Shown here: one piece after another, positions 7,334 through 60,171 of the stretch
How the letters are laid out: every line of letters starts with the position of its first letter
How positions within the stretch are numbered: the stretch's first letter is position 1
NCBI GenBank assembly: GCA_047495785.1
Contig: JBLDXI010000007.1
Location: 2,294,001 to 2,358,000, forward strand
Length of the DNA stretch: 64,000 nt
From: Lepidodermella squamata
Taxonomy: Eukaryota; Animalia; Gastrotricha
Direction: 5' to 3'
Program-made: the position numbers and the translations under genes
The notes under the pieces: model-generated
Told to the model about the DNA's origin: nothing
The model's input: the letters and a program-made list of their open reading frames with translations, nothing else
The model's database searches: none

Positions 7334-9852
7334 TCAGAACGCGAAATAAAGATGTAGGATGACGATGATAAAAATGAAACCTAAATAATAGACAATAACT
7401 AGCCGCGTTGTTGCAGTTTTCGCGTAGAAAGACGGTATGTCGCTGCTAGAATGCGACAACCAATCATCGTGTTGAAACTGCACATAGACGCTATTCGACC
7501 CTGGCTTATTCATCGGCGGCCGAACTGGCGCTGTTTTCGCCGCAGCCGCGTGGTGCCGTCCTAGGGCCAACTCGTGTTGTTGGTTATGCAGCTTTTTATT
7601 ATCAGAGTTCAGCTGCAATTTACAGGTATCAGCGATGCGGGCCAAACTATCCTGGGCTAGGACAGTTTTTCGCCAAATCAATAAACAACTCATCGCATGG
7701 TCTTGGCCGCGGAGTAAATTCCCTATCGATAATTTGACGTAATCTCCAGATTCGCCATTTTCAGACGGTAACGATGACAGGGTTCTATTGAGCTGGACCC
7801 AGATGAAAGTTGCCAGCTCATCGCCGTGTTGATCAAAGCCGGTTAAGTGCATTTCTTTCGCGCTATAACTCAGCGCAAAAAAATGCCACATTTTCCCATC
7901 CATCTTGTAATTTAACGGTCGCGCTGTGAATTGCGCAATGGGCTGGCCATGGGTTGAAATGAGGATTTTATTCAATGGTTTATAGCTGATTGTTAGGTAG
8001 GGTGACTCCTCAGGTAGGACCATCAGTTTCCCATTGCGAGGATTTCGCGAGGTTTGATATTGCGTCAGGGAAAGAAATTCGCCGTACTGTTGTAGGTAAG
8101 GATCGATGAGTGGTGCTGAGAATAGGAAACTTAGGGTGAAAGTTCGGCTGAAATTCGCTATCAAATACTCGGCCATGGGTTCATCCTAAATAAAACGGGA
8201 TATAAAGTTTGTGATTACAAATTTGAAATTGGAAAAATCGGTAAATTTGTATAAAAATTAGAAAAAATAAAAAAAATTGAAGATTTGAAAAATTTGAATT
8301 TTCGAAGATTTGAAAAATTCAGAAAAAAATTGAAATCTTCACATTTTTTCCGACAACTCCGAATGATGTTCCAGGTCGATTGAAGGGTCCCAAGCCGAAG
8401 AAAACCCGTGCCGCTCGGCTGATTTTAGACGGTTTAACAGAATTTGTGACATCCCAAAGCCCACTTTGCCGATCCATCGGGACGAATAATTCGAGCTGGC
8501 GCCTTTTAGGCAGCTGCGAATACGGCATCACGTGACCATGGTCGCATTTCGCCCTCAGGCTATTACCCTTAGTTTTGCATAGGCAAGGCAATTGCGACAC
8601 CTCCAAGGTGTTAAGCGCCTTTCGGTAGAAGGTCAAACAAGCTATTCTATCCAACGGGCTCAATTGGCCGATGCGTAGGGCTAATTTAGGCAGCGGGCGA
8701 CCAGCTGCAATTATTTTACCGCTGTTGTGTTCGAAAATTGTGAAGTGGTGAAATTCAGCTATTAAATCGCCAGTTGAGCGGTGGATGCTGAGCAGGCTCT
8801 CGTTGTGCTGATAATTAAAGGCGAGGAAGGACCATTCACCGGGTAGGCTGTCACTTACCAGGGTGACATTATTGGCCGGATGTGATGCAACTGCTTTATG
8901 AGTCACCCTAAAATAAAATAAATAATTAAATTCGTGCAATTTCTCTGAAAATAAAATTAATTCCCTATAAATAATAATTAATTAATTAAAAATTTGTGAA
9001 ATATTCAAATTTTGAAAGTTTTAAAATTCGAAAAATAATGTATGGCAATTTAAAAAGTTCACTGGAGAAAAATCATACCTTGGATAAGTCCAAATTCGAA
9101 TTTCCCAGCCAGAGTAGGTTACTTGGAATATGATTCGATCTCCAATAACCAGGCTGAAAATGTCTCCCTCGTTGTCATTTCTATTGAAATAAAGCGAAAA
9201 TGTGAAATCGTTGATCGCCACGGGGAAATTTTGCAGCGGTTCGAGCTCAGAGTTTGTCACAGCTAGAACATAGTCGATGTGGCCGTAGTGACTAGAAGCC
9301 GTGTAGGATGAATTGAATCGGCCGAAAGGGTCTTTATATTCAGCGGCAAGTTTCATATTCGCCACCGAGCTCGGCTGGGTGTGATCGATTCCGAAGCCGT
9401 TGTACTTTGGTCCGGAGAGGAAATTAGTCAGGCCATTTGTCGAATCTAGCGGCCAGAATCCGACCAGGTAGAACGGCTGTGGGCCGATCAAGTTTTTAGG
9501 TCGGGAATCTTCTGTTAGGGGTACAATTTCACTGCCAAATGTAGAGCTGGGAAGATCATTTTCGCTTGTCACTACCACCCAGCTGGAATCCGTGTTATCT
9601 GTGAGAATCGAAAATACAGATTATATCTTGCGATTTTTTCAAAACTTTAATTTCAGAATTAATTTGAATAAATAATTCTGAAATTAGGAAGTTCAATAAG
9701 AATTCAAAAATTCAAATTCAAATCCGAAGCTTCAATTTTCATCCGCAAATTTTTTCTTAATTCAATTTTCAATATTTATTCATAGTTTTACCTTGTTGGG
9801 AAGATTGGCTTATGAAGAATAGCGCAAGAATGAGCCAATATACAGTAATCAT
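7334..9852 (-). CDS. Signal-peptide protein with two LamG/concanavalin-A-like domains and a C-terminal hydrophobic anchor (about 4 exons)
   Basis: Exon 1 encodes MITVYWLILALFFISQSSQQ (ATG 9852). ORFs 9021-9578, 8319-8939 and 7334-8176 carry LVGFWPLD, FTFSLYF, WSFLAFNY and WHFFALSY. The protein ends in LVIVYYLGFIFIIVILHLYFAF. Confidence 0.65.
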
Positions 9853-19029: not shown

Positions 19030-20164
19030 AGGTGGATTCACTAATGTGCGACAGGTACGACAAGTGTCGTACCGTCGCATGCGACTGTCGCAGCTCTGTC
19101 GCATCAAATCCGCGGACGACAGCCGAGGGATAGTCACAGTCGTATGCGCACAAAACAATGACACGCGCGGGCGCTGAGACAGTGTCGCGCGCGGCTGATT
19201 TTTATATGAAAGGAAACCAAATTTGCAAAAAACTTGTCCAACTAAGTTTTTAACCAGAAAAATCGTTATTTTCGACATCAGTTACCCCATTTCCGCGTAT
19301 TTTCATCGAAATTTGATAATTTTAATTATTTTCACCTAGCACGGCACCACCTCGCGGATTATTGAGGGCGCTAACGACTTTTTTATTTAAATTTACTAAG
19401 GAAGAAATTCGTAGTCATTTGATAGAGAATTGTTTCAGTTTTAATTTGGTAAAAAAGCCGCTATTGTTTTCGAAATTAGATTTTTGACATTTTAGTGCGC
19501 GGGGCCACCGTTTTGTTAAAAATTTTGATGTGGTGTTTCGCGCCTTAGAGTAATAGTGCGTTGTCTATTCCTCCAGGTTTCGCGCACAAGTCCACTGTTA
19601 TACTTCGATTGCGCGCTTGAAGTGGACCGAACTAGGACGTTGTTTTACCTGCTGTCGGACGATTCTAAGCTGTCGTGTCGCACACGCGAAATTCCACCAA
19701 AATCGCGCGTGCGATGCGACAGGCCAGGTCCATGCGACAAAATCCTTTGTTTGAGTGCGCGCGCCCTAGTCGAATCTTGTCGCACGTGCACATTGTTCTC
19801 TGACTAGCGTTTATGAACACTCGGCGTGACTGTCGTACGAAACGCTGATGCGACGGTACGACGCGCGACAACGTCGGATAGTATATCGTTAGCGACGTTG
19901 AATAACTCGGATTTAGGCTTGTTTATATCCGGTTGAAGGGCCCGGGTGACAAGTAAAAAGCGGCTTTTCAACATGAATGAAGAGGCAAAAACGAAGACTT
20001 TTTACTTGTCACCTATCACCTTGAAATGGAAGTAAACAAGCCTAAATCCGAGTTATTCAACGTCGCTAACGATATGAACAACGATGCGATTTTCGCACCC
20101 GACAGTGCGACGGTCGAATGCGAAATATTCGTATCCGAAAATTCGCACATTAGTGAATCCACCT
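19030..20164. mobile_element. PIF/Harbinger-type MITE
   Basis: Perfect 22-bp TIR AGGTGGATTCACTAATGTGCGA with a TAA target duplication at 19027-19029 and 20165-20167; many internal TGCGAC/GTCGCA motifs. Confidence 0.9.
19886..20072. mobile_element. Small TA-flanked MITE nested inside the Harbinger MITE
   Basis: About 40-bp perfect TIR TCGTTAGCGACGTTGAATAACTCGGATTTAGGCTTGTTTA, with TA on both sides. Confidence 0.85.
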
Positions 20165-20388: not shown

Positions 20389-20893
20389 CATTATAGGGCG
20401 ACTTTGCAGTCACATGACTAAGGTCAAAGTCCGTCTATTTTTTTCTGGTCTTGGTCGCGCGGTCGCGCAGTCGTTGTGGTCGGGCGGTCGTGTAAAAAAA
20501 TGCTCACTTAAAAATGAGAGAAAAAAACGATGCACCACCAGGAGTCGAACTAAGGATGTTGGAATAAAAAGCCATGTTTTTAATCCACTACGCCACCAAT
20601 TCATGGAAATTAAGAGTTACTATCAGTGGATCCGATTGGCAACAATATGGGTGTAAATATTTTCGCGGCCGATTTCTTCAACTGGTGGCGTAGTGGATCA
20701 AAAACATGGCTTTTTATTCCAACATCCTTAGTTCGACTCCTGGTGGTGCATCGTTTTTTTTCTCTCATTTTTAAGTGAGCATTTTTTTACACGACCGCCC
20801 GACCACAACGACTGCGCGACCGCGCGACCAAGACCAGAAAAAAATAGACGGACTTTGACCTTAGTCATGTGACTGCAAAGTCACCCTATAATG
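20389..20893. mobile_element. Foldback/palindromic element with about 210-bp near-perfect inverted arms
   Basis: 20389-20598 (CATTATAGGGCGACTTTGCAGTCACATGACTAAGG...) is the near-exact reverse complement of 20683-20893. A solo terminus also occurs at about 23970-23998. Confidence 0.9.
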
Positions 20894-23394: not shown

Positions 23395-24485
23395 TAAATT
23401 ATATTTTACTGATACTATCTCACGGTGATCTTTCATTTTCCCGATTTGATTTGTGCTGACCCTTCTCAATAAAAACATCGCTGAATCTATGTTATGTTCT
23501 CATGTTATACAGAGTGTAAAAGAAATCGAGTTCAAAGTTATTTACCTGATTTTTCATCACTTCGAGAAGCTTATCCATGAGGCTACATCTGGCATTGAAA
23601 TGACATCTGAAATCTGTCATTTCGAACGGTTTTTCATGTGTGCGAAAATCATAAATGATACGTGAAAATCGTTGTTTTCAGCTGTCTTTAAAATTGGGGT
23701 TGTAGCCCTGTTGCCAACTGTTGATCGCGCGGCAATGAGCAATGTCTAACAGGCGAGAATCCCCTTTCCTCTTCTGCCCAACCTCATATAATTTATGGAA
23801 AAAATCCTTGAATTGATGAAAAAACAGCTTTGACCTCAATTTCTTGGACACACTGTAATATCATGGGCTGTGTTTCATTCATATGCGGCTGGAAAAGCCT
23901 CCGGTCTTTTTTGTTGATTAGGTATTTTTTGCATTGTTCCTTGTCCCAAAATCTTTCAAATCTTTCAGATCACATGACTGCAAAGTCGCCCTATAATGAA
24001 CATGTGTTTTTGTCATTCATGATGTTACGGCATTGCTGGAATTCCTACTCGTGATTGATTATTAGGTGCCGTTTGAGTGACTGGTGCTGAAAATGATTAG
24101 CAGGCAGTGAATAGCTCGGTTTGCTGGCATACTCGATCGAACTACACGAGACTCACGAGTTGCCTTGGTCACTGCTCCTATGCGCACCTACCTTCATTCG
24201 ATGAACAAAGATTACCAATAAAAGTACACAGTATTATTTAGGAATGAAGAAAACGCTTTCGTGATGTGTAGAAATGTTATTAACAGCAGTTTAGATCGAT
24301 CGAGATGATAGGCAGCTTATTTATTGACCTGATCGTTAGAATTTACATTCACATTTTACCGCCGCAGAAGGCTTCATCAATGAATTAATGACTTGCTGAT
24401 CGTATAACTGCTACCTCAAAATGAAACGACAGTCTTTTCTCTTTTACCTTCGCTCTTTTTTAGTTAGGATTGAAATACGCTAAAA

Positions 24486-33671: not shown

Positions 33672-34200
33672 ATGCTTCCGTATTGCAGGATCAAAGTCCA
33701 CGTGGTCACGTGGTATGAATAGCTAGTTCTGAGGCGTTATTTTTTTCGTTGCTTCGTCGTTTCGTCGTTTCGTCACTTCGTCATCTTATACAAAAAAAAC
33801 TTACGAAAAGAAAAAAAGGGAGCAAAAGGAGGATTTGAACTCAGAACCTTAAGGATCAGAACCATGGATTTGAGCCACTATACAATAGGAGGCTTTCTAT
33901 CTGCAACCGGCAAAAAACGCTTAAGTGCAGCGTTCGTTTAGTATATAAAAATGCCGAACGAGGATGACTACCATGACCCAGCAGTATTGCTCAGTGGTTT
34001 CGCCTTGTGCGTCAAAACCCAGTGGTCCCGGGTTCGAATCCTCCTTTTACCCCATTTTTTTTTCTTTTCTTCAGTTTTTTGTATAAGATGACGAAGTGAC
34101 GATACGACGAAACGACGAAGCAACGAAAAAAATAACGCCTCAGAACTAGCTATTCATACCACGTGACCACGTGGACTTTGATCCTGCAATACGGAAGCAT
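33672..34200. mobile_element. Palindromic non-autonomous element with about 125-bp TIRs and two internal tRNA-like segments
   Basis: ATGCTTCCGTATTGCAGGATCAAAGTCCACGTGGTCACGTGG... is inverted at both ends. The interior has TTGCTCAGTGG...GGTTCGAATCC (+, about 33981-34050) and TATAGTGG...GAGTTCAAATCC (-, about 33820-33886). Confidence 0.85.
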
Positions 34201-34986: not shown

Positions 34987-35155
34987 CGTTAGCTTCGTGT
35001 TGAATAACTCGGATTTGCGCTTGTTTGCACCTGTTACAATGTGAAAAGTAAGACCAGAGTTTGCGTGGATGAATAGCGGAAAAAATGACTCTTTACTTGT
35101 CACCCGTCACATCTTAGCTGACGTAAACAAGCCCAAGTTATTCAACGACGCTAAT
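34987..35155. mobile_element. Diverged copy of the 19886-20072 MITE
   Basis: CGTTAGC...GTTGAATAACTCGGATTTGCGCTTGTTT at left and TAAACAAGCCCAAGTTATTCAACGACGCTAA at right. Confidence 0.8.
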
Positions 35156-39385: not shown

Positions 39386-39796
39386 ATTTCCGATTACGCA
39401 CTATCAAACTACTTATTGCAATGTTTTCTCTAATCAAGTTCTAGGGTCTATAATTCTGTTTTTCAATGGTCGATTGCTGCGCTTTTGTCTCCTTGTTGCA
39501 ACGCCCTAATAAAAACCTTTCACGTTATGCCGATTACTTTTGTCTGAATGATAGGCCGATTGCGTTATCGATTGCTGTACAACAGAGGCCAACTCGAGCA
39601 GTACACATGTCATGAAATTACGGGTGCACAAATAGTGAATCATTTGAAAAATCGCGGCTTCGGCATAACCTGAGAGCCGAATTGCAATTGAAATAAATAA
39701 TTTAACATTTTTCAAATAAAGCCCACTCCGGCTTCCATCGATCGTAACGCATGCGTTATTACAGATTATTTCAGCGACGTTACTATTTTACTTTCA

Positions 39797-40978
39797 ATGC
39801 GAATTTTATCTATTCCGTTTTTGACCGCTATTCTCGGATCTTGCTTCGGGCAAGAATGTGAGTGTAACAGCCCGGATGATCAGGAAATCAACCCACCAAT
39901 TTCAACAATATTTCGCCGCGAAATTCGCGCCAGGTGTCTCTTGTCAACCGAGGCCATGAGCCCGCAAGAGGACGAGCAAGTTGCGACCCAAGTCAAGGTC
40001 TACGTCACAGTCGACCGATTTCAAAATATTGATGATGTGAAAGGAGCCATGAGCATCACAGCTGGGGTGTCAATGCATTACTTTGTGCCCTGTGTTCGTC
40101 AAATCGCTCGGGAATTGAACTATAGCACAGACGGGGTAACGATAATGCTTAATGAAACGCAGTATTGGAAGCCGCAACTTGTCAATCGCAACTCACTTCT
40201 GAGCATGGGAATGACCGAGAAGACTACGAGAATCATGATGCTTCAACCTGAGACTGGAATGTTTGAATATATGATAGTCGGTGATCTGCTAACAAGCTGC
40301 GAACTCGACCTATCCGAATTCCCGTTCGATTCGCAGTCATGCCCGATCACGATTACTTCATTCGTTCTATCGAAATTTCTCGAAATCAGCAACGAAAGTC
40401 AGATTATGCAACTGGGAGGCGCAGTTTTTCCAACGTCGTCGAGTTGGGATTTTAAAGGCTTCGAGACAAAAACGAAACGCGACTTTTTCGGGCCTTACAG
40501 CTATGATGAAGTCACCTTTCACATTAAAATGAAGAGATTGCCTTGGTACTACGTCTCTAGCATTATGTTAATGAACGCGATACTGTCATCGCTGATCAGT
40601 ATAGCCTCACTCATCCCGCCGGATTCTACAAAACGAGCGCAATATGCCGTGACTATACTACTAGCGTTCGTTATGCAACACGACCAAGTTCTGGAAATAA
40701 CCCCACATACGTCGCAAAGTGTCTTCATGACGAATTACATTATGAACGAAATCGTATTGGCGCTTTTTGTTTCGATTTACTCTGTTATTATGGCTGGCGT
40801 TATTGATTTCTTTGGCGATGAGGCTCGTCGGAAAATTCTGGTTTACAAACGTCATGGCCAGCCTAAGTACATTAGTTTTTGCCGATTTATCGATACAGGA
40901 GCTTTTTTCGTGTTCCTAGTGTGGATGCTAGGTCTCCAATCATATGCTATGTATGTCTCGGCCAAAAGTAGTGACTGA
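39797..40978 (+). CDS. Intronless divergent Cys-loop (pentameric) ligand-gated ion channel subunit
   Basis: Signal peptide, WKPQL, Cys loop CELDLSEFPFDSQSC, pre-M1 MKRLPWYYV, four TM segments and IDT before M4. Confidence 0.9.
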   Translation: MRILSIPFLTAILGSCFGQECECNSPDDQEINPPISTIFRREIRARCLLSTEAMSPQEDEQVATQVKVYVTVDRFQNIDDVKGAMSITAGVSMHYFVPCVRQIARELNYSTDGVTIMLNETQYWKPQLVNRNSLLSMGMTEKTTRIMMLQPETGMFEYMIVGDLLTSCELDLSEFPFDSQSCPITITSFVLSKFLEISNESQIMQLGGAVFPTSSSWDFKGFETKTKRDFFGPYSYDEVTFHIKMKRLPWYYVSSIMLMNAILSSLISIASLIPPDSTKRAQYAVTILLAFVMQHDQVLEITPHTSQSVFMTNYIMNEIVLALFVSIYSVIMAGVIDFFGDEARRKILVYKRHGQPKYISFCRFIDTGAFFVFLVWMLGLQSYAMYVSAKSSD

Positions 40979-47138: not shown

Positions 47139-48329
47139 TTTTTCGATCACGCGAAAATCTGCTAAATACCAGACGTTTAATGTTTTCCTTTATCTTATGC
47201 TTTTTAAAATCGATTGTTTCCGCCTATAATTTTATTCGAAGCGAATATTTCTTCTTTTCTTCGGCCATGTATTATAGCAACGTACGAAAGATGGGGTCAC
47301 GTCTCGCATACATCTATATATGTAAATTTAATAATTTTTCATCATCTGTCTATCAAACGTTAGTATTTTGCTGAATAAATCGAAGTGCGAAAAGCGCAGC
47401 TTGTTTTCGACAAACGTTGTCATGGTTGATCTAATACTGCACAACAGCAAAATACACATCGCGAGGTGTACGCCGCAGCTACAATGTGTCCAAGAAATTT
47501 AGGTGAAAGTTATTCAAGTACACGCCGTTCCGCCATTTCATGGAATTTTTTCAGGTGGGTTCATTCCTTAGAGAGAGGAAATTGGCCAGATTTTTGTGAA
47601 CAATGGCCCGTTTCCATGCCTGAGCTGAAATTAGTTGTCAACACCGCACAATAGTCATAGTCAACACCGAGAAAGAGTCATTGTTAACTCATTGACTGCC
47701 AAGGCCCCGATACATCGGTTTCTCCCAGGAGAAACACTAATACCTCCACTAATATTTGAAATGTGCTGGTCCACTGTGTAAACAACGGGCGCGCATGCAT
47801 GCGCGGGGTAACAATGTAAACAGTAAACACGCAATGTGCGCTGCAGTCACGTGACGGCGTTCGCTTTGTAAAAATGAGAAATCAATCAGAGAGAAATAAT
47901 TCGAATTATCACGCCTTTTATGGCGAGAATGGTGCCTGGAATTTTCAATATAATATTTTGAGGATTCTAATTTCGGATTTTTTATTATGGCACTAACTAT
48001 TCACTATGATTTAGAAAGAGTTTTCTGCCAGTTTTGCTTTGCCGCTGTCATGTTCTCATTTTTGAAGACCGCTTCAAAGTAATAATTTTATCTGTAGACG
48101 ATGTAAAAAAACTCAGCTTACTTCAGCATGAAAGCATTTTACTTCGACAATTTCAGAGCGAAGAGCGATAGCTGATGATTTATTTCGATGAATTATTTCT
48201 AAATTGTGTTTCTTTGCTTTATTCCGAATGCAACCCGCAAATAATTTCCAAATGCTACAACAAATACAATATAAACCATAAAAACAGACAAAAATAAAGC
48301 AAGACAGAGTAGATGAACTGCTCAGAAAA

Positions 48330-48800
48330 TGACGCCTCAGAAGTCCGTGAAGAGGCGAATCCGGAGACAGGCCTTGCGAGTTCTCGGCTAGAAACATGAA
48401 AAGAGGAAGCGGCGGCGGTGCGGCGATGACGGCCGGTTCAAAAGCTGATAGCTCAACCGGAGTAATGGCAGGATAGAAGGACGTGGTCGAGAATAAACAC
48501 GACGTCGGCCTGCGGTATGGGCAACAACGCCACCAACAGCGAATAGGCAGCGCTCAGCAGCGCAGTTGTTGGGAATGAGCTTTCGAGCGGCGCAAAAAAT
48601 GACGCCGTAGGCGAGGGCGATCACAGCCAAGGTCGTGACAAAACCACCAGGCAATGTAGCAACAATTCCGACGAAATCGCCGCTCATTTTTCGGCAGCGA
48701 CCGTCGATGCTGTTGGCAATTTTATCGCGCCGATGTAGTCGCGCAGAACAAGTCGTTGTAGTAATTTTCGTTGTATTCGTCGATGATCATGACATTTCGA
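48330..48800 (-). pseudogene. Frameshifted paralogue of the membrane/AT-hook cargo gene at 51882-52514
   Basis: STNTTKITTTTCSA ~ STTTTTTTTTAWSA; DFVGIVATLPGGFVTTLAVIAL ~ DFGNVLMALAAGFGAALSMLAL; PNNCAAERCLFAVGGVVA ~ PGNGTAEQGLIAVGAVVA; after a frameshift, AVIAAPPPLPLFMFLA ~ AIVAPPPPVFVFRA. Confidence 0.75.
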
Positions 48801-48850
48801 GCAGTACTGCAAATCTGGCAGTAACCGGGCGTTCGGAATCAATAGTTGAT

Positions 48851-51431
48851 TTATCGCTTGTTGAACACATTCATCTGGTGCCATTTGTTGAAGCAGGTGT
48901 TCATGTGAAAAGCAGGATGAGAACCGTCCTCTTTCGGTTGGCAAGCCAGGCACCAATGTGAAACCCTGCCGCCGCAGTTCATACAAGGGCGCTCTTTTTT
49001 ACCAGGCATTTTGGTAAGGTCATGAATCTCGGCTTTTGAGCTGCTGCTGGAAGAATCGTTGCTTTTTGATGAATCGAAGGACTCAGAACTCGCCACTGAG
49101 CCATCCTCTCCGATCATTCCGATCAGAGCTCTAATGACTGCTAAGCGAAATTCAAGAAGCGACATCCGAGAGGTATTTCCGCTTTGCAACTTGAAGAATT
49201 GATGGGCAGCAATCATGCCGCTCTCAAGAATCCTGAAGAAAATTTTTCGATACCATTTATACGACTTCCTATTTGCATCATAGTACGCGGCCTGAAAAAA
49301 TGTGAAAAGATAAAATATTTACGAATAGCTCAAATATGTTTGCTCACATTTTGATCGTGACAATCCACCGCATTCATTGATTTATTGTATTGATCGACAA
49401 TGAGAGGTTTCATGACAGTCTTGATCCTTTTAGCCGGTGGCTCGCCCATACGCGGTGCCGCATCGTCATCGTCGTCGAGTTTGCGCTTCAGGCCGGTTTC
49501 AGACTCAACATCCTCCTCCTCTCCATCTTCGCTATCGCCCTCTGAATCCGAAGCTAGGAAGTACTTGGACATGGCAGAATCGTTGTCGCCGCTATCATCG
49601 CCGTCAAATTCGGCTTCTGAATCCACTTCCACTCCGGTAGAATCTGCCTCAATCTCTTGATATACCGAACTTTGCCCTGTTTGCGTTTCATTGTGCTCGA
49701 TGACCCGTTGAATTCGAGCCGGAAGGGTAATCGGAATCATTTCTGGGGCAAACTCAGTCGATAGCATAAGTACTTCGCGATTGTCCTTCCACTTGAGTAC
49801 ATTGATATCGTCTTGTCTTCGGCAAATTATTTCACCTGTCTTCAAGCTAGCTTGAACCACTTCGGGCGGGTTTCCGACACGGTTTTTTTTCAGTGTTCCG
49901 GTTAGGTGAGTTAGATTAGCCAATAGGTATTTAGCGAGTTCGACGGAAGTGTAAAAATTGTCGACAAAAAGCGAGTGTCCCTTGCCAAGAAGGTATTTGA
50001 TGAGTGATTTCACGACTGAAAATGTGTGGCCTTTGCCAGAAATAATATCATCTTGAACATTATCCGCGCCTGAGTAGACATGGAAGCGAAGAGGGATTCC
50101 AGTTGATGACTCACATAGCATATAGATCTGTAAAATAGCAGATTGAAAACCAAGGTTTTCACACTAGTCTCTAGTCTCACTAGATCGAACCTTCGAAATT
50201 TAAAATTTTAGCTTCGAAATTAAAATTGTGGCTTCAAAAAGTAAAATCCTAGCTTCGAAATTAAAACTGTGGCTTCAAAATGTAAAATCCTAGCTTCGAA
50301 ATTAAAATTTTAGCTTCGAAAAGTAAAATCCTAGCTTCGAAATTAAAATTATGGCTTCGAAAGTAAAATATTGGCAAGAGTTCTATTCCGATAGAATCCG
50401 AGATTTGGGTATTATAATTTTCAAGAATATCACTTCACGCATATACGGATTTTTTTGTTATTTTTCTGAGCCGTTATTCTGCTCCAGAATTCCAGAAATA
50501 ACGGCTACTTATTCTATGTCTTTTATAGCCAAAATATAAGTCGTAAAATGACAGCAAAGCTGAAAGTAAAGGGAGTAAAGGAAGTAAAGGAAAGGTTCTC
50601 CAGATATTTTGATATTTTCGAATTTTTTCATTTTTTTATTTTCATTGCCTAGCGTTTTGATGAAAAATTAAAGAAAAACGGTTTTATGATTTTTGTGGGG
50701 TTCTGTCTCAAGTAAAACATGGCCATAAATTGTCTCAAAAATGCCGCTTTAAAATTAAAATTGCATTCCGATTTTGATATATATATATTTCATTTTATAG
50801 AACCTTTGACCTATCTTACCTTTATACCGAACTTCGCCTTTTTCGCCTTGTTGTACGACTTGAATGCCAGCCTTCCCTTGAAAAGCACTTGAGATTCATC
50901 GATTGCCAGATTTTTGCCAGGTGAATAAAGGTCATTCATCCGATTTTGATAGAAGTTTAGAACAGGTCTGATTTTATAGAGGCGATCGGTTTTGATGTTT
51001 TGCGCCAGAAATTGGTTGTTGTTGAAATGAAGATTTGACAAAATCGCTTCAAATCGATTTCGAGACATCGTCAAATTGAATATCGGTGTTGCCATCAGTT
51101 TGTCCTCCGTCCAGTAGCTTGCGATTGTTGGCTTTCGAATCACTCCCATTAGCAGCCATAAACCGAAAAATCGCTCAAGCTCCGGAACTGTCAATGGCAC
51201 CCAGTCGTTGATTCTGGCGTTGGGTTTAAGCCCAATTTGACGTAATTTTTGATTGGCATATCTATTCGTTTCCTTGCATACCATTTCGAGAAACTCGATG
51301 GTGAAAATTAGCCGGAAAAAGCTAACTGGTGACAATCGACCGCAATCAGGCTGGATTTTAAGTTTTTGGGTTCCGGTGAACGGAAAAGATAGAGGAGGTT
51401 CATCAGAATTGATCCACTCGCTGGCATCCAT
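48851..51431 (-). CDS. piggyBac (PGBD4-like) transposase, 3 exons (51431-50820, 50127-49348, 49291-48851), about 610 aa, apparently intact
   Basis: MSRNRFEAILSNLHF, DRLYKIRP, IDES, KFGIK|IYMLCES, VDNFYTS, WKDNREV, YNKSMNAVDCHDQN|AAYY, KWYRKIFF and a C-terminal Cys/His domain. Both introns are GT-AG and phase 0. Confidence 0.95.
50191..50370. repeat. Minisatellite (about 20-21-bp unit GCTTCGAAATTAAAATTTTA) in transposase intron 1
   Basis: About nine degenerate tandem copies. Confidence 0.85.
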
Positions 51432-51881
51432 GAAATTAGAGACAAAAATCTGAAATCTTTAATTCGAAGTTTGAAAATTCTAAATTGTGTGCCTTTCAGT
51501 GCTAAAGCCCGGGCCGTCAGGAATTCACCGCTTCACCGCACGCGGAAGCATATGTAAACAAAACTGCGTGGTCGAAAAACAAACAAATCCGGAGGCGAGT
51601 TCCTGCAAGATACCGCACCGCGCTATAGGTGAAAATTTCAGGATAATTCCCGGATCAAACAAAAGTGGAACAAAACACAAGACCGAAAATCCGCCAATTA
51701 ATTATTTTATTGCATCATTGCAAAGTCAGAAAAGCCAGAAGCGAAATACAACAATACAATACAAAACGAGTCATCAATCAACAACAATACAAAATTCGCA
51801 ATACTGAGAACTGAGAATACAAAAAACAGCGATAGAAAAATTGTCAGTAATTTACGAAATGTTCAACAGGTAAACAGCAGC

Positions 51882-52514
51882 TCACGCGCGCCTTGGACGG
51901 CCGCGGCCGCGACGAGGCGCCACCGGAGCTGGCGCAACAGGTGGCGCTGCCGGAACGGGCGCTCGAAACACGAAAACAGGAGGCGGCGGTGCGACGATTG
52001 CGGGAATGGCGGCAGGCTGAATGGTGGCTTCGATCGGAGGCGGTGGCAGAATCGGAGGAAGATTCGGCAGAATCGGCCCGGCTCGAGACAGAACAGCCGG
52101 CGGAGGAGGTCGAGCAGGTACCTGCCGCTGAGCAACAACAGCGCCAACTGCGATTAGGCCTTGTTCTGCAGTGCCGTTGCCTGGCTTGTAGGGCACAGGG
52201 TATCTGCGGCGAAAGCAGCACCACCAGATGAAGAAAATAAAAACAGAACACGTCAGCGCTAACATCGACAATGCCGCCCCAAAACCGGCCGCCAACGCCA
52301 TGAGCACATTGCCGAAGTCGGGAGTAGCCGGGGTCGTTGTAGTCGCACTTGTCGCAGTTGTCGGCAATGTCGCCGTCGAAGTACCAGGCGCAGACCAAGC
52401 GGTTGTTGTCGTCGTTGTCGTTGTTGTGGATAGAGCAAGCAAACCCGGCCGCGCTGAACGGGTGACGATGCCGTATCCTGGCTGATAATAAATATCGAAG
52501 TCAAAAGTCGACAT
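51882..52514 (-). CDS. Transposon cargo: single-pass membrane protein with Thr-rich N-terminus, Pro-rich tail and terminal AT-hook
   Basis: 210 aa: poly-Thr region, hydrophobic VLMALAAGFGAALSMLALTCSVFIFFIWW, CCFRRRY, Pro/Ala-rich tail and C-terminal PRRGRGRPRRA. Confidence 0.7.
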   Translation of the reverse strand: MSTFDFDIYYQPGYGIVTRSARPGLLALSTTTTTTTTTAWSAPGTSTATLPTTATSATTTTPATPDFGNVLMALAAGFGAALSMLALTCSVFIFFIWWCCFRRRYPVPYKPGNGTAEQGLIAVGAVVAQRQVPARPPPPAVLSRAGPILPNLPPILPPPPIEATIQPAAIPAIVAPPPPVFVFRAPVPAAPPVAPAPVAPRRGRGRPRRA

Positions 52515-52599
52515 TATTCAGAAATTTGTTAGCTCGAATTTACTTATTTTTATTTTCTTTCCTCCTTTTGTAGTCACCTTTCAACCGTTTTACTGTATC

Positions 52600-52860
52600 A
52601 TTACGTCGGCGTCGTCACAGCCGACCGCGGTCTCGCTGTCTGCCAAAACAGCCGAGCGGCTCCAAGGGCATGTTAACCGGCCGCGACGCCCACCGGCGCC
52701 GTTTCAAAGTCTGTAATTACTGACCGCGCACTACAACCGCCCGCCTCGCCACAGGTGCGCGCGCGCGCTTTCTCCACAGGTGCGCGCCCGGTGCGCGCCC
52801 GGTGCGTAATCACACGCTCGAGTGAGGATCACGTATTTTATGTCAACGGCGTGGGACTAG
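52600..52860. promoter_or_regulatory. GC-rich putative bidirectional promoter between divergent cargo genes
   Basis: CpG-rich island with repeated CCACAGGTGCGCGC and CCGGTGCG motifs between ATG 52514 (-) and ATG 53001 (+). Confidence 0.45.
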
Positions 52861-53000
52861 AAAGGAATTAAATTGAAATGAAAATATTTGCCAAAGCCAT
52901 TTCCGGATACCTGATGAGCCGTTCAAGCAATATATAGCCAGCTCCAAAAAGTCACCAGTCACCAGATAAATTTTTCAAACAGAATTTCCGTCATTTTGTA

Positions 53001-53951
53001 ATGAAAGGCTTTTTTCATGTATTTTTTGCGGCGGCGCTTATTATGCCTGCGTGCTGCTTGGAAATAACTGAAATATCGCCAACTCAGGTCATTTCAGGTC
53101 GATACTATTATGACCAGCTGAAAGCTCAGAACAATTCTTGTGTCGATAGATGGCTTGAACACGCGAAAAAGTTGTGCGCAAACTCAGTGATGTCGTGGCA
53201 AAATGTCGCCGAGTCAGCTCTCAAATGCTATCTGTCGGCCAAAAACTCTACAAAAGCTATAAATTGTCCTATGACACAGCCTACAGAATTCGCCAGCCAA
53301 ATTAATTGCTTGAAAAATTCTCTCGAAGTTTTAGACTGGCTCACTTACATGATTTTCGTTGGCGAAATTCGCGAAATATGTAGCTATTTTTTATTTTTCA
53401 AGGAAGAAAATTCTCCTCTCTACATACTCGCTAGACACTTTGTTCAGGCAGTAGTTGATTGCTTTCCAATTGAAGGCCCCGTGATTGATTTTTTCTCATA
53501 TTTCAAAGAGTCGACGCTTTTCGTCGCTGTTACTTCTCAAGTCTTTTACAACTCTTCGCTTGAACAGTCTTTCTTGAGGTATCGAGTCTCATTCTACATA
53601 TTTCACAGTGTTTTCCTGACATTATTTCGACGAAAAAAATTCCTAATATCTTTGTATCTTGTTGCCTTCGCCGAGTTCGCTCTCCAAATTTTTCTCAAAT
53701 CAAAAAGTGGGTTTGAATGGCGATATTTTCTTGGAGAGTATCTATTGATTATTTTGCTTCGCTGGCTATTCATCATCCATTTCTTGATTTTTGGAGAAAT
53801 ATGGTCGCCTGTTCATAATTTATGGAAAAGGCTTAGCCATTGCTGGGACTACAGTTCAACTTATCTCTGCAAACTAGGACGCGATCTAACCCCGCGAAAA
53901 ACTGATGTTGCATCTGTCAAAACAAGGTCGAAAAAGAAATCCGAGGATTGA
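53001..53951 (+). CDS. Transposon cargo: Kar5/GEX1/Brambleberry-like membrane protein (signal peptide, 6-Cys domain, 2-3 C-terminal TMs)
   Basis: CVDRWLEHAKKLC...QNVAESALKCYL...NC...NCLKNSLEVLDWLTYMIFVGEIREICSYF matches by eye the Cys spacing and the W/F-x-x-Y...IC end of the family's cysteine-rich domain. Hydrophobic segments and a basic tail follow. Confidence 0.65.
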   Translation: MKGFFHVFFAAALIMPACCLEITEISPTQVISGRYYYDQLKAQNNSCVDRWLEHAKKLCANSVMSWQNVAESALKCYLSAKNSTKAINCPMTQPTEFASQINCLKNSLEVLDWLTYMIFVGEIREICSYFLFFKEENSPLYILARHFVQAVVDCFPIEGPVIDFFSYFKESTLFVAVTSQVFYNSSLEQSFLRYRVSFYIFHSVFLTLFRRKKFLISLYLVAFAEFALQIFLKSKSGFEWRYFLGEYLLIILLRWLFIIHFLIFGEIWSPVHNLWKRLSHCWDYSSTYLCKLGRDLTPRKTDVASVKTRSKKKSED

Positions 53952-54324
53952 TCTGAACCTTTTCGATTTTTTCTATGCCGGAAGGAAATTTTTTAATTTG
54001 TTGCGCTACTTTGGGAATTTCGACATAAAATTTGTGAAAAATTTGCAAAATTGGGATAACTTGAAAATAATTGACCCTTCAGTATTTTACGGTAGCGAGA
54101 AACAATTTCCTTTCGGCAGCAGCCTTTTTCTTCAACTCGTCCGTCTCATTCATTCGCGACGATGTTTTTTACATTTTGATTATTGGCTTTGCCTGAATTT
54201 CGTTCATTTCATTTATTCATTGAAGGCTAAATTTGAGTACCTCTTTTCAATAATTGCTGATTGTATCGTTTAGCTCCAGTAAAACAAAGTCTGATGCTGT
54301 ACTATTTTGTTTTTTATTTTAGGA

Positions 54325-55096
54325 ATGCAAGTATTTACGAATTTAGTTTCTACTGTGGTCGAGAGGCATCGCCTAGCTGTTCGGGAGACAAACCGAGAAT
54401 TCTATGGAACCAGCCGATTTGAAGAGAGCGGTTCAACGGCCGATGTAAGTCGCTTGAAAAATTAGATCCGTCAGCATTTTCGTATTTTTTCCACATTCGT
54501 AGAGCGATTCTCGAATTGGCGTGTATGACTTCGGCAGCGAGTCGGAATCGATCTCCGTCTCAAGCTCTTCAACGCCATTGCAACAAAGCACCACGTCGGC
54601 TTTAGCGCCGCCAACAGCTGTATCCGCAATTCTACCGTTCAAAGACGCAGCGTCTAAAATTACGCCGCTTCGACAGGTTCATCGGCTCGTTTTTCGGCGT
54701 GACGCGCGTCAATCGGAAACAAATGAAAATCACTCCCACGCTCAATGGATCGCAAGAAGTTTCGCCGACCTGCCTGGTGATAATGACACAAATAGCATGA
54801 TATTGTTAGGTTCGCATGTGCTGGAGCAAGAAATCATAAAATCGGCTTATGAAATGCATAAAGATAAACCTTGTTTGTTTGCGAAAAGAATTTTGAAAGA
54901 ATGTGAAAGTCGGTCCCGGCAATTTAGCAATGCGTCAGTTTGGAATGATGCGGATTTGATTGACGATGTAACAAAACTTGTAATGCAAAAATACGATCAT
55001 TTTTTCCTAATTCGACGTGCTATTTGCCAAAATTTCGCAGAGTGTAATCGTAAAAAGAAAGCATACGAGTCGAAGAAAAAATCGGCGAAAAATTAG
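54325..55096 (+). CDS. Transposon cargo: putative BEN-domain DNA-binding protein, 2 exons (54325-54444, 54503-55096), about 237 aa
   Basis: In-frame gtaagt...cgtag intron; Ser-rich N-terminal part; C-terminal PCLFAKRIL...SV..DADLIDDVTKLVMQKY...IRRAICQNFAECNRKKK resembles the BEN helices; Lys-rich NLS-like tail. Confidence 0.55.
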
Positions 55097-55696
55097 CAAT
55101 TTGTGCTTTGTGCGTGGTGATCAGTTTTTTGTTCTTGTTGCTTGAAATAAATGTTTTTGTTCCAATGATTTTTGATAACTCCTGAATTATTTTCACCTGA
55201 ATTTTCACTACTTGGCGGTTTGCGCAAATAATAACGTTTCGAAAACAGGCTTCAAGTTTGATTTACGCATTCAACAGCGAGGGCGAAGACCGCGTCTTTG
55301 TTTACTGGTCGCACTTGAGAGTCACCCAAGGCGCGCCCGATTTGTTTGCATAACAGCTAACAGCGGCGATAAACGCGCATGTTTTGTTTATTTTAAACCT
55401 TGAACAAACATAACACAAAACGCGAAATCGCTATTCCAGCATCTCGCTAGGTGAAAGTTGGGTTTCTCCGGGGAGAAAAACTCACGTGAGAAAAAAATCT
55501 CCGGGAGAAAACTCTGGCAGTGAAAGAGTTAAGGAACAGTCATCTTTATTACACATTCTGCCTCGATGTTTTCAGTTATTCTGCAGTTGTCCAGAGTTGT
55601 GTAATTGTATATAAGCGAAAGAAAATTAAGAAAATCATGAGAGATTCAACGACATTTGCAATAGCTATAACAAAAACCACAACGGCGACAAACAAA

Positions 55697-58600
55697 TCAC
55701 AACAAAAATTCGGAGCAAACAACAGCATTAGCAGCTCGCATTTCGAAGCAAGAGAAGTCGTTGCACAGCTTCTTGAACTCCCTGAGTGTCTCGTTAAACT
55801 TGTTCCGTTTAGCCACATCAAGCGCCATCTTGAACTGCTCGACGTGATCTTCGATTTCGTCACACTTTGCGAGATATTTAAATACTGAAGCGAGATTCTT
55901 TTCAGCTGCAACGACCAGAGCGGACTTGCCATTCCTCGCCGACCATTTGACAGGTTCATTTGAGTATTTTTGAAACATCATCAAGGTAACAACTCGTTGC
56001 CGCTCTGAAATCGACCCGCTAAGTGTCTGGAACCAAGCGTCATAGACGTTGTAGGAATTGATGAACTTTTTGGCCAATTCACTTCGCCCAAATCTAGCTG
56101 CCAGCATCAGTGGATTGAACTGCACTTCATCGTCGAAATCGAGCCTGATGGTGGCGTTAACATCAGCATCATTTTTGAGCAGCACTTCGAAAAACTCGAC
56201 GTCAAAGTCGCTCATCACCGCAAAGTTGAGGCAATCCATTCGCAAGAGCCCAGACTCGACAATTTTAACCACGCTGACATTCGGATTGGCGCCTCTCTTC
56301 AGTAGAAGCTTGAAGTTATCCAACTTCTTACAGGCCAAAGCTCGGAATAACGCGGATTGGTTGCTGAACACACCGGTATCGCAAGCTTCTGCAGCTTTGG
56401 CATCTTGCCAATTGACGTTGTAGCCTTGAGCCAGCACTTTTTCAAGCGTTTCAGCGCCGTTTTCGAGCCCGGCCGCTTCGATAAGTTCGCGCTGTTTAAC
56501 AACGACATTTGCAGAGGGTTCGCAGGATCCGGCTGGTTCCCACCTCCCGAAGCCGAACGGGCAGTCGAGTTTTTCCGAACCGACCAAAGAGAACCCGTTG
56601 TAGCACTTGAGAAGCGGCTCGATGTGGTCGCCAGCGACGTAGCCGTTTTCGATGTTGGACGGGTGTCCATAGCACGGTTTCACTTGTCGGCATAGTTCGC
56701 CGCCCAAAACCCGGTAACCGACCGATTCGCATAGAGATTTAAAGAATGCTGATCCAAATGATTTAACGTCTTGTGCAATGTAGTTCGGGTTGATCTTGCC
56801 GAACTCAGCAGCGATTTTGAAGCTGTCCTGTTCGAGTTTGTGCGGGTCTACTCTAGTTGTCGGCGATTCGATAGTTGAAACGTCGGTCTCAGGGTTCTGG
56901 TTTTCGAATTCAATTCGGTTCGATGCGGTTGTAGTTGTTGACGTAGTAGATGAGTCGCATTCAGTTTTCAAGCAGGCGTTTGATAGATCAATTGACCACG
57001 AACCGCTTTGCAAGCATTCAGCCACTACGCTTTCGAGCTCAAAATCTGAACAGATCACTTTGACTTTCTGGCGAGTGAGAAAGGTTTTCCGATCGTTGGC
57101 TGGTGGCCATGTTAATATTCCAGGCTTTTGAGGCGCCACAAAGACTTCGCCTCCGGTAACTAACGGCAAGTCGCATGCCTGAAGTCAAAATGTAGGAATC
57201 AATGATTACGTTGATCAAGAAAATCAAGATTTTTAAAGGGTCTTACTTTTAGCGGAACCAAATTTGCCTGTTACCGGAACCAAATTTTGGAATTTTCAAT
57301 GGGTGGTTTTCTCGAAGCGGTTTTGTCGATGTTAAGACCAAACTGGGTATAGACCTGGTTTCATGTAGACCAAATCAAATTAGCATTTGGTTTTAGGATT
57401 GTCCACGAATTTTTGTCGATTGTTCTTTTGGTACATTCAATTGTTATGAAACACAGACGTTGGGACAAACGGCTAAAATAGCTGTTAATCCGGCGATGGA
57501 TGGCTTTCTTTAAAACCAAGTTTTAAATTTTAAAACCGAACTGTTTCAAACCCCCCGTTAAAACCGCCTGTTCAGCCCCAATTTACCCATGAGCTGTAGA
57601 CCCGCACCCTACCGGGTCTACACATTTGGAGTTTATTTTCTAGAAAAATCTGGTTTCAGCTTCTCATGAACGAGACAACTGAAACCCGAGTTCTAAAAGT
57701 GATATTTAGAACCCAAGAATAGCCCCGCGTGAATACGGACCAGTTCGACAGTTTGCATAGATGAAGTAACGAGTACTCTATACCGATACAAGACTAAGGA
57801 CAGGATCTAACATCGGCTAAATGGCGATGAAACTTTACGCATTAGCGAAAAACAAACTTCATGAAAAACTCTGAAACCACCTCTTCCGATGAGCGTAATT
57901 TAAGATGGATGATTAATTTGCATATTCCAATATTTTATTCATCCGCGTTATTACATGGAAATGCACATGAATATTTTCAGCAGGATTTTTTTGAGGGGAT
58001 TTCCTGCCTGGGTGTAAAAATAGAAAATAGTTGACCAATTATTCATCAAAAGGAGCCGATTTGAATATCTGAATATTTCTCATATGAAACGATTAGTGCA
58101 TTTTGCGGATTCATATTGAGTACCTTTCGTTTTCATTGGCTAATAAATTCACCATCTCGCTAATTTTACCTATCAATAATTTTCGCTATCAAGAAATGTT
58201 ACCCTATTTTTCTGAAAATAATTTATTTAGTACTTGCGCTACAACCTGCATTCTGCATTCACATTTCAAAATGTTAAATTTAAGGTAGATAAGTGATCAA
58301 CTTCAGGCTGAGATTAATGTGGCATTACTATATCCAAATTCTGGGATCGTAAAATAATGCCGATTTCACAGCCGAAGTCATTCGACTCGAAATAAGCAAA
58401 TGAACTGTGGTTACCTGAAAATCTAAGGTAACCCGGCCGATTTCACGTGTAAAATGCGCGAAAAAATTGTGGCAATTTAAATGGAATGAAGCAATAAATC
58501 ATCATGTTAGTTTCTGCCAGATGGTTCATATATTCGAGTCAAAGAAATGCGGCCATGTTAAATCCTTGGTTAAATCACGTGTCAGACAAGCTACCCAATT

Positions 58601-60171
58601 TCGTCAAGGTCGCTGCTACCTCCAAGAAATCGGTATTGATTTTATCTGTTTTGGACGGTGTTTTGATTTAGAGGAATCTCCGGGTATACATCAATTTAGT
58701 ATGGCAGTCATTTTCCCGGCCAGGTGGTTAGATAAAGGGGTAATAATTTGGAAAATCATGGCTTTCATGAAAAAATCGCCGAGAACTTTTAATTAACTTC
58801 GAAATGATCGCATTATTGAACTACAGACAGCCGGAAATTCATTTAATATTGACCTGCCAATTTTTCATTTTTGGCAAAGGGCTCGGGTTAGCCGAGGAGA
58901 AAATGTTCCCCAGCATCACAGTTAACCAGGCTGTACCGCCCATTTTTCGAAGAGCAGGAATCCCTAAATTTGGTCGCTGCGGCTTAACTTCGGCCACTGG
59001 CCGAAATTCGGACACTAAGTGCTGTGCAGCAAAAAAAAATTCTAAATTCAGGCGAGGGGGCCATGTCGCTTCTCGAGTGCTTTGTACCATAAACACCCGA
59101 ATTTCAGGCATCATGTCGTCAAGGATAAGCTCTCAGGTAAAGCAACAAAGGCCATTTCCACGTTAGGCGAATTACCGAGGCGAATTTAACGGTATCAAAC
59201 TTAAGGTATTAGTGTAACTGGATGAGGTGGCCGAAATTAGGGCACCCGGTTCCCTATTCCAACAATTCCACATTTTCCAACATATTCTAATTTCAAAGTT
59301 AATTTCCAAATTTTTCGTAATTTTAACGTGATTGTTACGCAACCTAATTAGTCTAATAAAGTCTACAGTTAATCCCCGATCAGAAACTGAACTCGTTTTA
59401 TATACGCAAGAATAAGCTCTTGGTCTTGTTCAGACCGAAAATGTTTTTGGTTTGGTCTTATAAAACTTGGTTTTAATGTAAACTGCTTCGAGAATACCAC
59501 CCAATGTGCCTGAAACCACTTTTCGAACCTTTTCAGGATGACATGATTGATCAGCCAAATTCCAAATAAATCATCTTTAAATTCAGCCTGAAATTCTGTG
59601 TAAGACGCGTTCATCGCTATAGAATTCAGACATTGCCCCAATTTCGTAGAAATATTCGAAAAGTGACCTTTTTCTCATCTAAAATTATGTTCCGCAACAG
59701 GCAAATTCGGTTCCGCTAAAAGATATTCTGATTTTTAAATAGGTTTGATAACAAGGTTTGATTTTTCATTAAAATTACCTTAGAAACCTCGAAATATAGC
59801 ATTTTTTCAAAATAAATAATAACAAAAATACTGTTGGAATTCAAACAACTCGATATCAAAAGAATTCGAAGCAAAAATAAAAAAAACCAACAGTTGCTCC
59901 CAAATTTTCCCAATGGATTCAAAGCATGTTTCTTTGAAGTATGTTGCAATTGGGAATCCAGGACATTTGAAATGATGTTTGGGGTGCCGTCAAGGACGAA
60001 TGTTGGTAATTATTGGGAAAAAAAATTTATTTCGACTAAAATTTTAATTTTAAATTTTAAACATTTTTAAAGGCTGGTAATATTTTTAAGAAATTTCAAA
60101 CTCACTTGAAAGCTTGGCTGGCTGCAAATAACAACAACGCCAAGCAAGGAGAAGACAATTTTCGAAAACAT
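55697..60171 (-). CDS. Putative secreted sushi(CCP)x2 + ankyrin-repeat protein, 2 exons (60171-60106, 57178-55697)
   Basis: Exon 1 MFSKIVFSLLGVVVICSQPSFQ|gtgagt joins in phase 0 to ttcag|ACDLPLV. CCP motifs (ECLQSGSWS, IENG...CYNGFSLVGS...C...GRW...C) are followed by ANK motifs (KLLLKRGANPN, LLKNDADVN, NPLMLAARFG, GKSALVVAAE). The exon 1 link is inferred. Confidence 0.65.
58420..58560 (-). mobile_element. Degenerate internal fragment of the 10367-10857 MITE family
   Basis: TAGTTTCTGCCAGATGGTTCAT is the reverse complement of ATGAACCATCTGGCAGAAACTA at about 10410; GGTAACCCGGCCGATTT mirrors AAATCGGCCAAGTTACC. Confidence 0.65.

Follow-up and report, generated by a model that had tools for sequence, protein, structure and literature searches.

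A candidate 7.8-kb piggyBac-like element carrying additional open reading frames in the gastrotrich Lepidodermella squamata

Can a piggyBac transposon carry genes besides its own transposase? Animal cut-and-paste transposons almost always encode a transposase alone, and a 64-kb stretch of the genome of the gastrotrich Lepidodermella squamata (assembly GCA_047495785.1, contig JBLDXI010000007.1, positions 2,294,001 to 2,358,000; hereafter the window, within which all coordinates are given) contains a locus that raises this question. At 47684–55532, two copies of the TTAA target site enclose 7,841 bp holding a piggyBac transposase gene, three further open reading frames (ORFs)—ORF210, ORF316, and a 237-aa ORF, together called the cargo below—and a decayed duplicate of one of them. 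The comparisons described here support a single piggyBac-type unit with cognate ends and extra intact ORFs between those ends and the transposase. Probably the locus is a piggyBac-like element, 7,841 bp long and autonomous, that has passenger or accessory genes inside the mobile unit.

The two ends were compared with all pairs among the 337 TTAA sites of the window at distances of 1.5–12 kb. The 14-bp terminal inverted repeats (TIRs) that abut the two TTAA copies (Table 1) are imperfect, being identical at 12 of 14 positions; two TTAA-flanked pairs in the window reach this level, against 0.05 expected from Markov shuffles, and no third match to the 18-nt TTAA-plus-TIR pattern occurs in the 64 kb with three mismatches allowed. 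A survey of 157 piggyBac-like elements describes TIRs of 14 ± 2 bp, a motif in their first six nucleotides, and a class with palindromic subterminal repeats (PMC5381638); the TIR length found here equals the published mean, and the first six nucleotides, CTC(A/T)TT, agree with the motif. Farther inward, the palindrome TTTCTCC-NN-GGAGAAA is restricted within the window to the two element ends, and the looser form TCTCC-N0-3-GGAGA occurs three times, in each case no more than 60 bp from an end. A scan between the ends detected no weaker remnant of either end or of the palindrome.

Each subterminal region holds further symmetric motifs. Palindromes of 10 nt around CACGTG lie on both sides (GTCACGTGAC at 47846–47855 and CTCACGTGAG at 55481–55490), and the left region has a 16-nt GC-rich palindrome at 47790–47805; these may be additional binding sites.

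Between the ends, the minus strand encodes an intact transposase of 610 aa in three exons with GT-AG introns, assembled from the ORFs 50811–51431, 49330–50121, and 48851–49216. Exon 1 covers profile positions 1–158 of Pfam DDE_Tnp_1_7 (E 5e-46) and exon 2 positions 160–280 (E 1e-25). Exon 1 likewise aligns to residues 75–268 of the piggyBat transposase (PDB 9c0f, E 1e-33), and exon 2 resumes at residue 272. The catalytic Asp contexts LAIDE, FVDNFY, and AVD align to conserved positions, and the C-terminal Cys/His cluster is also present. The locus combines DDE_Tnp_1_7 and a DDD triad with TTAA flanks, short TIRs starting with C, and a Cys-rich domain accompanied by subterminal repeats, the features by which the piggyBac superfamily is recognized.

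A HMMER scan of exon 1 against 1.84 billion representative proteins returned 13,760 matches, the best of them 39–48% identical; named relatives come from mosquito, dragonfly, and fishes at ~40% identity, and exon 1 has no relative in viral contigs. On these sequence comparisons the transposase is an isolated branch among ordinary animal piggyBac transposases. The gene has two peculiarities: intron 1 holds 41-bp tandem repeats at 50191–50374, and an insertion of ~100 aa rich in Asp, Glu, and Ser (49348–49750, approximately residues 135–235 of exon 2) separates the second from the third catalytic Asp. The insertion is missing from piggyBat and from the compact relative described next.

The nearest relative with recoverable DNA, protein P0029 on locus L007 (Logan contig ERR6927214_90509), is 46% identical, with 45–47% over exons 1 and 2. 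L007 is a complete 2,546-bp element (1–2549) with TTAA flanks and perfect 14-bp TIRs (CAGGTTGACTGCCG), and it is usable as a reference architecture for this piggyBac clade. A nine-base TIR core, TTGACTGCC, is common to L007 and the left TIR of the window element. At the transposase-5′ end of L007, its own palindrome, CTCCGATCGGAG, stands twice, at offsets 23 and 65, and the copies at the 3′ end are farther from the TIR; the window element likewise has two palindromes near the TIR at its transposase-5′ end, at offsets 25 and 57. Unlike the window element, L007 is compact and holds a single intronless gene for a 580-aa transposase, which starts 221 nt from the 5′ end, and no cargo. In the window the right end lies 4.1 kb from the transposase ATG, as against 0.2 kb in L007. 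The contigs of three further relatives (L011–L013) are too short to show ends.

Because its palindrome layout matches that of L007, the window-right end is of the correct 5′-end type for the orientation of the transposase, and by this likeness and the shared TIR core both window ends are cognate to it. Canonical piggyBac has a comparable design, with a 13-bp TIR and a 19-bp palindromic internal repeat in asymmetric spacing, bound by the Cys-rich domain (PMC5861402). The end design shared with L007 is the strongest evidence that the whole 7.8 kb would be one transposon-type unit with added internal DNA.

The added DNA is organized as two divergent units. ORF210 lies upstream of the transposase on the same strand; across a GC-rich spacer, ORF316 and the two-exon 237-aa ORF are read in the opposite direction. 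ORF316 begins with a signal or anchor sequence, continues with ~190 aa containing 7 Cys and three N-x-S/T sites, and ends with two strong transmembrane (TM) segments (residues 213–233 and 242–269) and a basic tail. It stands in 39% GC DNA, and none of 500 dinucleotide shuffles reached its length (maximum 186). The 237-aa ORF has a Ser-rich acidic N-terminal part, a C-terminal part that is helical in a low-confidence model, and a Lys-rich tail; the stop-free frame of its exon 2 (197 codons) was equalled in 1 of 500 shuffles. ORF210, a low-complexity sequence, comprises a Thr-rich N-terminal part, one TM segment (residues 67–102), basic residues, and a Pro-rich tail whose last residues are RGRGRPRR. 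Its length was likewise matched in none of 500 dinucleotide shuffles, with a shuffle maximum of 207 that makes the excess marginal.

Signals around these ORFs offer some indication of how they might be expressed. The sole plus-strand AATAAA of the cargo unit lies at 55146, 50 nt past the stop of the 237-aa ORF, and none follows ORF316; because the signal follows only the second ORF, the two may share one transcript. The spacer contains CACAGGTGCGCGC twice as a direct repeat (52750 and 52775) and might act as a bidirectional promoter. Acceptor-like sites (a T-rich run followed by CAG or TAG) stand 2–25 nt before the start codons in the transposase gene (51432–51455), ORF316 (52975–52985), and the 237-aa ORF (54310–54322), and similar sites precede the ATGs of host ORFs (39770–39780, 24455–24462, and 8186–8195). 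These sites are compatible with introns in 5′ untranslated regions or with spliced-leader trans-splicing and operon-like expression.

A decayed, frameshifted paralogue of ORF210 begins 77 nt past the transposase stop on the same strand. Its sequence (48774–48387) is collinear with 52424–51961 within ORF210 in three DNA blocks of 67–73% identity; the protein alignment scores 83, compared with 29 ± 4.6 for shuffles, and tblastn gives E 3e-6. The alignment spans the TM segment and beyond, then resumes in another frame. The transposase gene therefore has an intact copy on one side and a decayed copy on the other, both within the TIRs. Copies that flank the transposase inside the TIRs and have diverged to 67–73% identity point to long residence in the element lineage. 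This arrangement is consistent with an old internal duplication and argues for ORF210-type sequence having long been part of the element rather than of adjacent host DNA. The divergence between the two copies is compatible with neutral decay and says nothing on selection.

The structure set out in a preliminary description of this locus is borne out by these analyses. The TTAA duplications at 47684 and 55529, the matching subterminal palindromes (found in the 64 kb solely at the element ends), the intact transposase, the three further intact ORFs arranged divergently around a GC-rich spacer, and the decayed paralogue were all present as described. The 14-bp TIRs it reported are both there and significant against shuffles, but they match imperfectly rather than being identical.

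What the cargo might do is a separate matter, on which the preliminary description proposed a nuclear-envelope and chromatin module: ORF316 as a Kar5/GEX1/Brambleberry-like fusion factor, ORF210 as a membrane-anchored AT-hook tether, and the 237-aa ORF as a BEN-like protein, together aiding movement between nuclei or biased transmission. Some features invite such a reading. The signal peptide, Cys-containing luminal region, and C-terminal TM segments of ORF316 match the Kar5 family in generic topology, the tail of ORF210 holds one literal RGRP flanked by Arg, and the 237-aa ORF has its helical C-terminal part and Lys-rich tail. Pfam searches with the whole ORFs and with sub-fragments, at E ≤ 10, returned no match to Tht1/Kar5, BEN, or AT_hook for any cargo ORF, nor any recognizable viral domain. 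For ORF316, searched whole and as two halves, the only match was Mac-1 on the N-terminal fragment (E 0.15); ORF210 gave no match of note, and neither the 197-aa exon of the 237-aa ORF nor its C-terminal 108 aa matched any profile.

Homology and structure searches gave a similar picture. Among 5.8 billion proteins, ORF316 and the 197-aa exon have no homologue; both lack relatives in viral contigs, and ORF316 also lacks them in prokaryote genome contigs. Sequence searches of the PDB gave no match for exon 2 of the 237-aa ORF and, for ORF316, a best hit at E 0.72 to an unrelated protein. Single-sequence AlphaFold models reached pLDDT 44 (ORF316) and 41 (237-aa ORF) and were unusable; the ORF316 model contains no long coiled coil, a feature that cannot be judged at this confidence. 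Kar5/GEX1/Brambleberry proteins are, moreover, about twice the length of ORF316. By our own estimate, an ORF so rich in Pro, Arg, and Gly would hold one RGRP through its composition at a level of ~1%, before allowing for other noticeable motifs.

The nuclear-envelope and chromatin theme is therefore unsupported, and a module of that kind is very improbable. The Kar5-like and BEN-like assignments found no backing in the sequence searches, and the proposed AT-hook is one RGRP in a sequence of biased composition that also has a TM segment. The orphan status of the cargo is weak evidence either way, because a host gene in the same window, the 846-aa ANF-receptor ORF (11083–13623), likewise has no relative at E ≤ 1e-10 among the 5.8 billion proteins.

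Several observations weigh against the view that the locus is one cargo-bearing element. Only one copy is seen in the window, where self-comparison reveals neither a second copy nor an empty site, and scans of metagenome, viral, and prokaryote-genome collections yielded no family copies. Every piggyBac end sits at TTAA, the obligatory target, so that matching TTAA flanks are no proof of a single insertion and are uninformative on one versus two events. ORF210 lies in 60% GC DNA with several other frames also open, so its reading frame rests mainly on its paralogue. A codon-usage log-likelihood trained on host ORFs scored a probably non-coding 122-aa ORF like the cargo. The cargo could also have been acquired by this copy after it inserted here.

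The single copy and the uninformative flanks leave room for a composite locus: a compact piggyBac that lost its 5′ end, a right end (to 55532) contributed by a second, mostly deleted copy or by a miniature inverted-repeat transposable element (MITE), and ORFs that are host genes and were never mobile. Host genes here are equally orphan, as the ANF-receptor ORF illustrates, so orphan status is no mark of the element. Against this, the scans found no inner end or palindrome remnant between the ends and no other family copy or MITE in the 64 kb. The distal end has the proper 5′-end palindrome geometry for the orientation of the transposase, and the decayed ORF210 paralogue sits past the transposase stop but short of the 3′ TIR, within the would-be compact element. 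We consider a composite origin unlikely. Entry of the cargo after insertion is disfavored on the same grounds, namely that inner ends and nearby family members are lacking, that the distal end has the right polarity, and that the paralogue lies in the 3′ region.

Alternatively, the extra DNA might consist of remnants of nested insertions or internal duplications whose open frames are unexpressed or non-functional. No cargo ORF showed a homologue, domain, or confident fold in the searches made, ORF210 is marginal against shuffles and overlapped by open frames, one paralogue has already decayed, and the codon-usage test did not set the cargo apart. Against this stand the length of ORF316 in AT-rich DNA, which no shuffle reached, the clean frame-preserving 58-bp GT-AG intron of the 237-aa ORF with AATAAA just past its stop, and the order of signal peptide, TM segments, and charged tails, which is that of real membrane proteins. 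No TIR or target-site-duplication signature of a nested element bounds the region; the only candidate, a 22-nt inverted pair (82%), has no target duplication and was taken as chance. That the added DNA is junk thus seems improbable.

The single-element reading, with cargo inside the mobile unit, keeps the advantage of ends that are unique and significant with no inner-end remnant between them, and of ORF lengths above chance in dinucleotide shuffles. In addition, engineered piggyBac constructs move cargo far larger than that of the window element (PMC6431247). In a stronger version, ORF210, ORF316, and the 237-aa ORF are genuine accessory genes that selection has preserved in a piggyBac lineage over repeated transposition. 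In its favor, the old duplicate of ORF210 hints at long residence, but we regard this version as unlikely. Equally tentative is its corollary, a non-viral multi-gene piggyBac whose membrane or secretory and basic proteins serve the element, for instance in transmission or in the regulation of transposition.

Under the preferred reading, the insertion site of the element would be the interval separating two convergent host genes. If the element works as canonical piggyBac does, the core of its 610-aa DDD transposase would contact the 14-bp TIRs and the Cys-rich C-terminal domain the palindromic subterminal repeats, and the element would be cut out and pasted at TTAA sites. Relative to the compact architecture of the clade, the stretch from the 5′ subterminal region to the start of the transposase would have gained ~4 kb, and a further 0.4 kb would follow the transposase stop. 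Besides one decayed duplicate, this DNA would comprise three lineage-specific ORFs that seem intact, the predicted products being a mucin-like single-pass membrane protein, a protein with a signal sequence, Cys residues, and two TM segments, and a basic soluble protein. The passenger or accessory ORFs would be carried along whenever the element transposes, and may bring it some benefit.

Canonical piggyBac-like elements (T. ni piggyBac and bat piggyBat; structural group SG4 of Bouallegue et al. 2017) have the same DDE_Tnp_1_7 domain, DDD triad, and Cys-rich tail, the same TTAA target, a TIR of ~14 bp starting with C, and asymmetric palindromic subterminal repeats. The window element differs from them in its size (7.8 kb versus a mean of 2.8 kb), its three extra ORFs and decayed duplicate, and a transposase with two introns, an acidic insertion of ~100 aa, and 39–48% identity at best. 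The size as such is less exceptional than the preliminary description implied: it is well above the mean of 2,813 bp for the 157 surveyed elements but inside their range of 1,721–8,451 bp (PMC5381638), and the element sits at the upper edge of that range, not beyond, because the survey reaches 8,451 bp.

Multi-gene content has precedents elsewhere. PIF/Harbinger and CACTA are TIR elements with a second ORF or captured sequence, and Pack-type elements usually hold gene fragments without a transposase. MULE and Pack-MULE elements join the window element and these families in enclosing a second ORF or captured host sequence, the latter carried by Pack-MULEs within their TIRs (PMC6431247). All of them belong to other transposase superfamilies, and the window ORFs look complete and the element autonomous. 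Within piggyBac, Teratorn of teleosts, a fusion with an alloherpesvirus, likewise mobilizes many extra genes with a piggyBac transposase and TIRs (PMC6431247); it measures 41–182 kb and has recognizable herpesvirus genes, whereas the window cargo covers 4 kb and has no recognizable domain and no relative in viral contigs.

Our literature search found no paper describing a piggyBac with non-viral multi-gene cargo, which is absence of evidence only. If other copies in the genome also have these three ORFs, and purifying selection acts on them, this would be a rare natural piggyBac with accessory genes. Such an element would be intermediate between compact elements and the giant virus fusion Teratorn, and would show how piggyBacs gain additional genes and express them. 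Should the cargo occur at this locus alone, the element is merely an oversized or rearranged copy within the known range of 1.7–8.5 kb.

Table 1. Coordinates of the element's features in the 64-kb window
Feature	Position	Strand	Basis or remark
TTAA target-site copy, window-left end	47684–47687		Read directly from sequence
14-bp TIR CTCATTGACTGCCA, transposase-3′ end	47688–47701	+	12/14 versus other end; core common to L007
Subterminal palindrome TTTCTCC-CA-GGAGAAA	47719–47734		TCTCC core at offset 38 from left TTAA
Decayed, frameshifted ORF210 paralogue (includes ORF 48388–48687)	48387–48774	−	DNA blocks, protein score, tblastn
Transposase exon 3, 146 aa + stop, Cys/His-rich C-terminal domain	48851–49291	−	tblastn continuity with relatives L007–L010
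Transposase intron 2, 56 bp	49292–49347	−	GT-AG
Transposase exon 2, 260 aa, second and third catalytic Asp	49348–50127	−	Pfam; piggyBat residues 272–423
Transposase intron 1, 692 bp, GT-AG	50128–50819	−	Junction continuous in alignment to piggyBat (from residue 268 to 272)
Transposase exon 1, 204 aa, first catalytic Asp (LAIDE)	50820–51431	−	Pfam DDE_Tnp_1_7 E 5e-46; piggyBat 9c0f E 1e-33
ORF210, 210 aa	51882–52514	−	Upstream of transposase, same strand; frame supported by decayed copy
Divergent intergenic spacer	52515–53000		GC-rich core ~52590–52830, up to 59% GC
ORF316, 316 aa	53001–53951	+	Length reached in 0/500 shuffles
237-aa ORF, two exons (BEN-like in the preliminary description)	54325–54444 and 54503–55096	+	Frame-preserving 58-bp GT-AG intron
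Two subterminal palindromes, transposase-5′ end	55465–55476 and 55498–55508		Offsets 57 and 25 from right TTAA
14-bp TIR CTCTTTCACTGCCA (reverse complement), transposase-5′ end	55515–55528	−	Matches other end 12/14
TTAA target-site copy, window-right end	55529–55532		Read directly from sequence

The scans for copies used a 21-mer TIR pattern, which matched 6 times in metagenome contigs, 3 times in prokaryote genomes, and 0 times in viral contigs. These counts are near the chance rate (~4 matches calculated for the 596-Gb prokaryote collection), and none of the matches resembles the element beyond the 21-mer; all were rejected as copies. At positions 258–469 of one of the metagenome loci, L002 (contig Ga0209366_1085829), a 212-bp TTAA-to-TTAA segment is bounded by CTCTTTCGTTGCCG and CTCTTTCACTGCCA in inverted orientation. 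This segment may represent a MITE of piggyBac type, from an unrelated sample, whose TIR resembles that of the window element, or it may match by chance.

On one side of the element is the end of the fourth gene of a tandem array (~47150), and on the other the stop of a minus-strand ankyrin/Sushi ORF (55697), the two host genes being convergent. Similarity among the paralogous array units ends ~530 bp short of the element, and excising the exact TTAA-to-TTAA segment leaves ~700 bp between the two genes. Domains recognized in the host genes of the window are animal-like and include trypsin with Sushi, an ANF receptor, a Cys-loop ligand-binding domain, and many ankyrin repeats. Apart from the cargo's own decayed ORF210 copy, the window holds no cargo paralogue. 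Very short introns of 56–58 bp occur in the window, exact look-up of ten of its ORFs in a collection of 15 billion proteins found none present, and Rfam and tRNA scans were empty; the lineage appears to be poorly sampled.

Other repeats stand apart from the element. A separate 2.5-kb unit at 57246–59722 has 42-nt inverted repeats (81% complementary, starting CTTTTAGCGGAACC) and an inner TTAA-flanked pair at 57510/59473 whose 14-mers match at 13 of 14 positions (AACCAAGTTTTAAA); with no ORF of at least 150 aa, it resembles a non-autonomous TIR element from another family. Three units of foldback or MITE-like type lie at 20389–20893, 33672–34200, and 19883–20075. Two have arms of 126–139 nt that are 99% complementary, and the third has arms of 78 nt (87%), with related sequence at 34999–35136. 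The arms near 33806–34066 hold a tRNA-like GGTTCGAATCC motif, in which ARAGORN calls no tRNA.

The tandem array itself (24479–47150) consists of four multi-exon genes, diverged paralogues that have an EGF-like Cys motif, in units of ~5.1–7.8 kb that are 60–87% identical in blocks. An ORF with the Cys-loop ligand-binding domain (39797–40978) lies between units 3 and 4. Toward the other end of the window, at 4478–6979, an 833-aa ankyrin-repeat ORF is built from at least 13 tandem 102-bp units of 63–78% identity.

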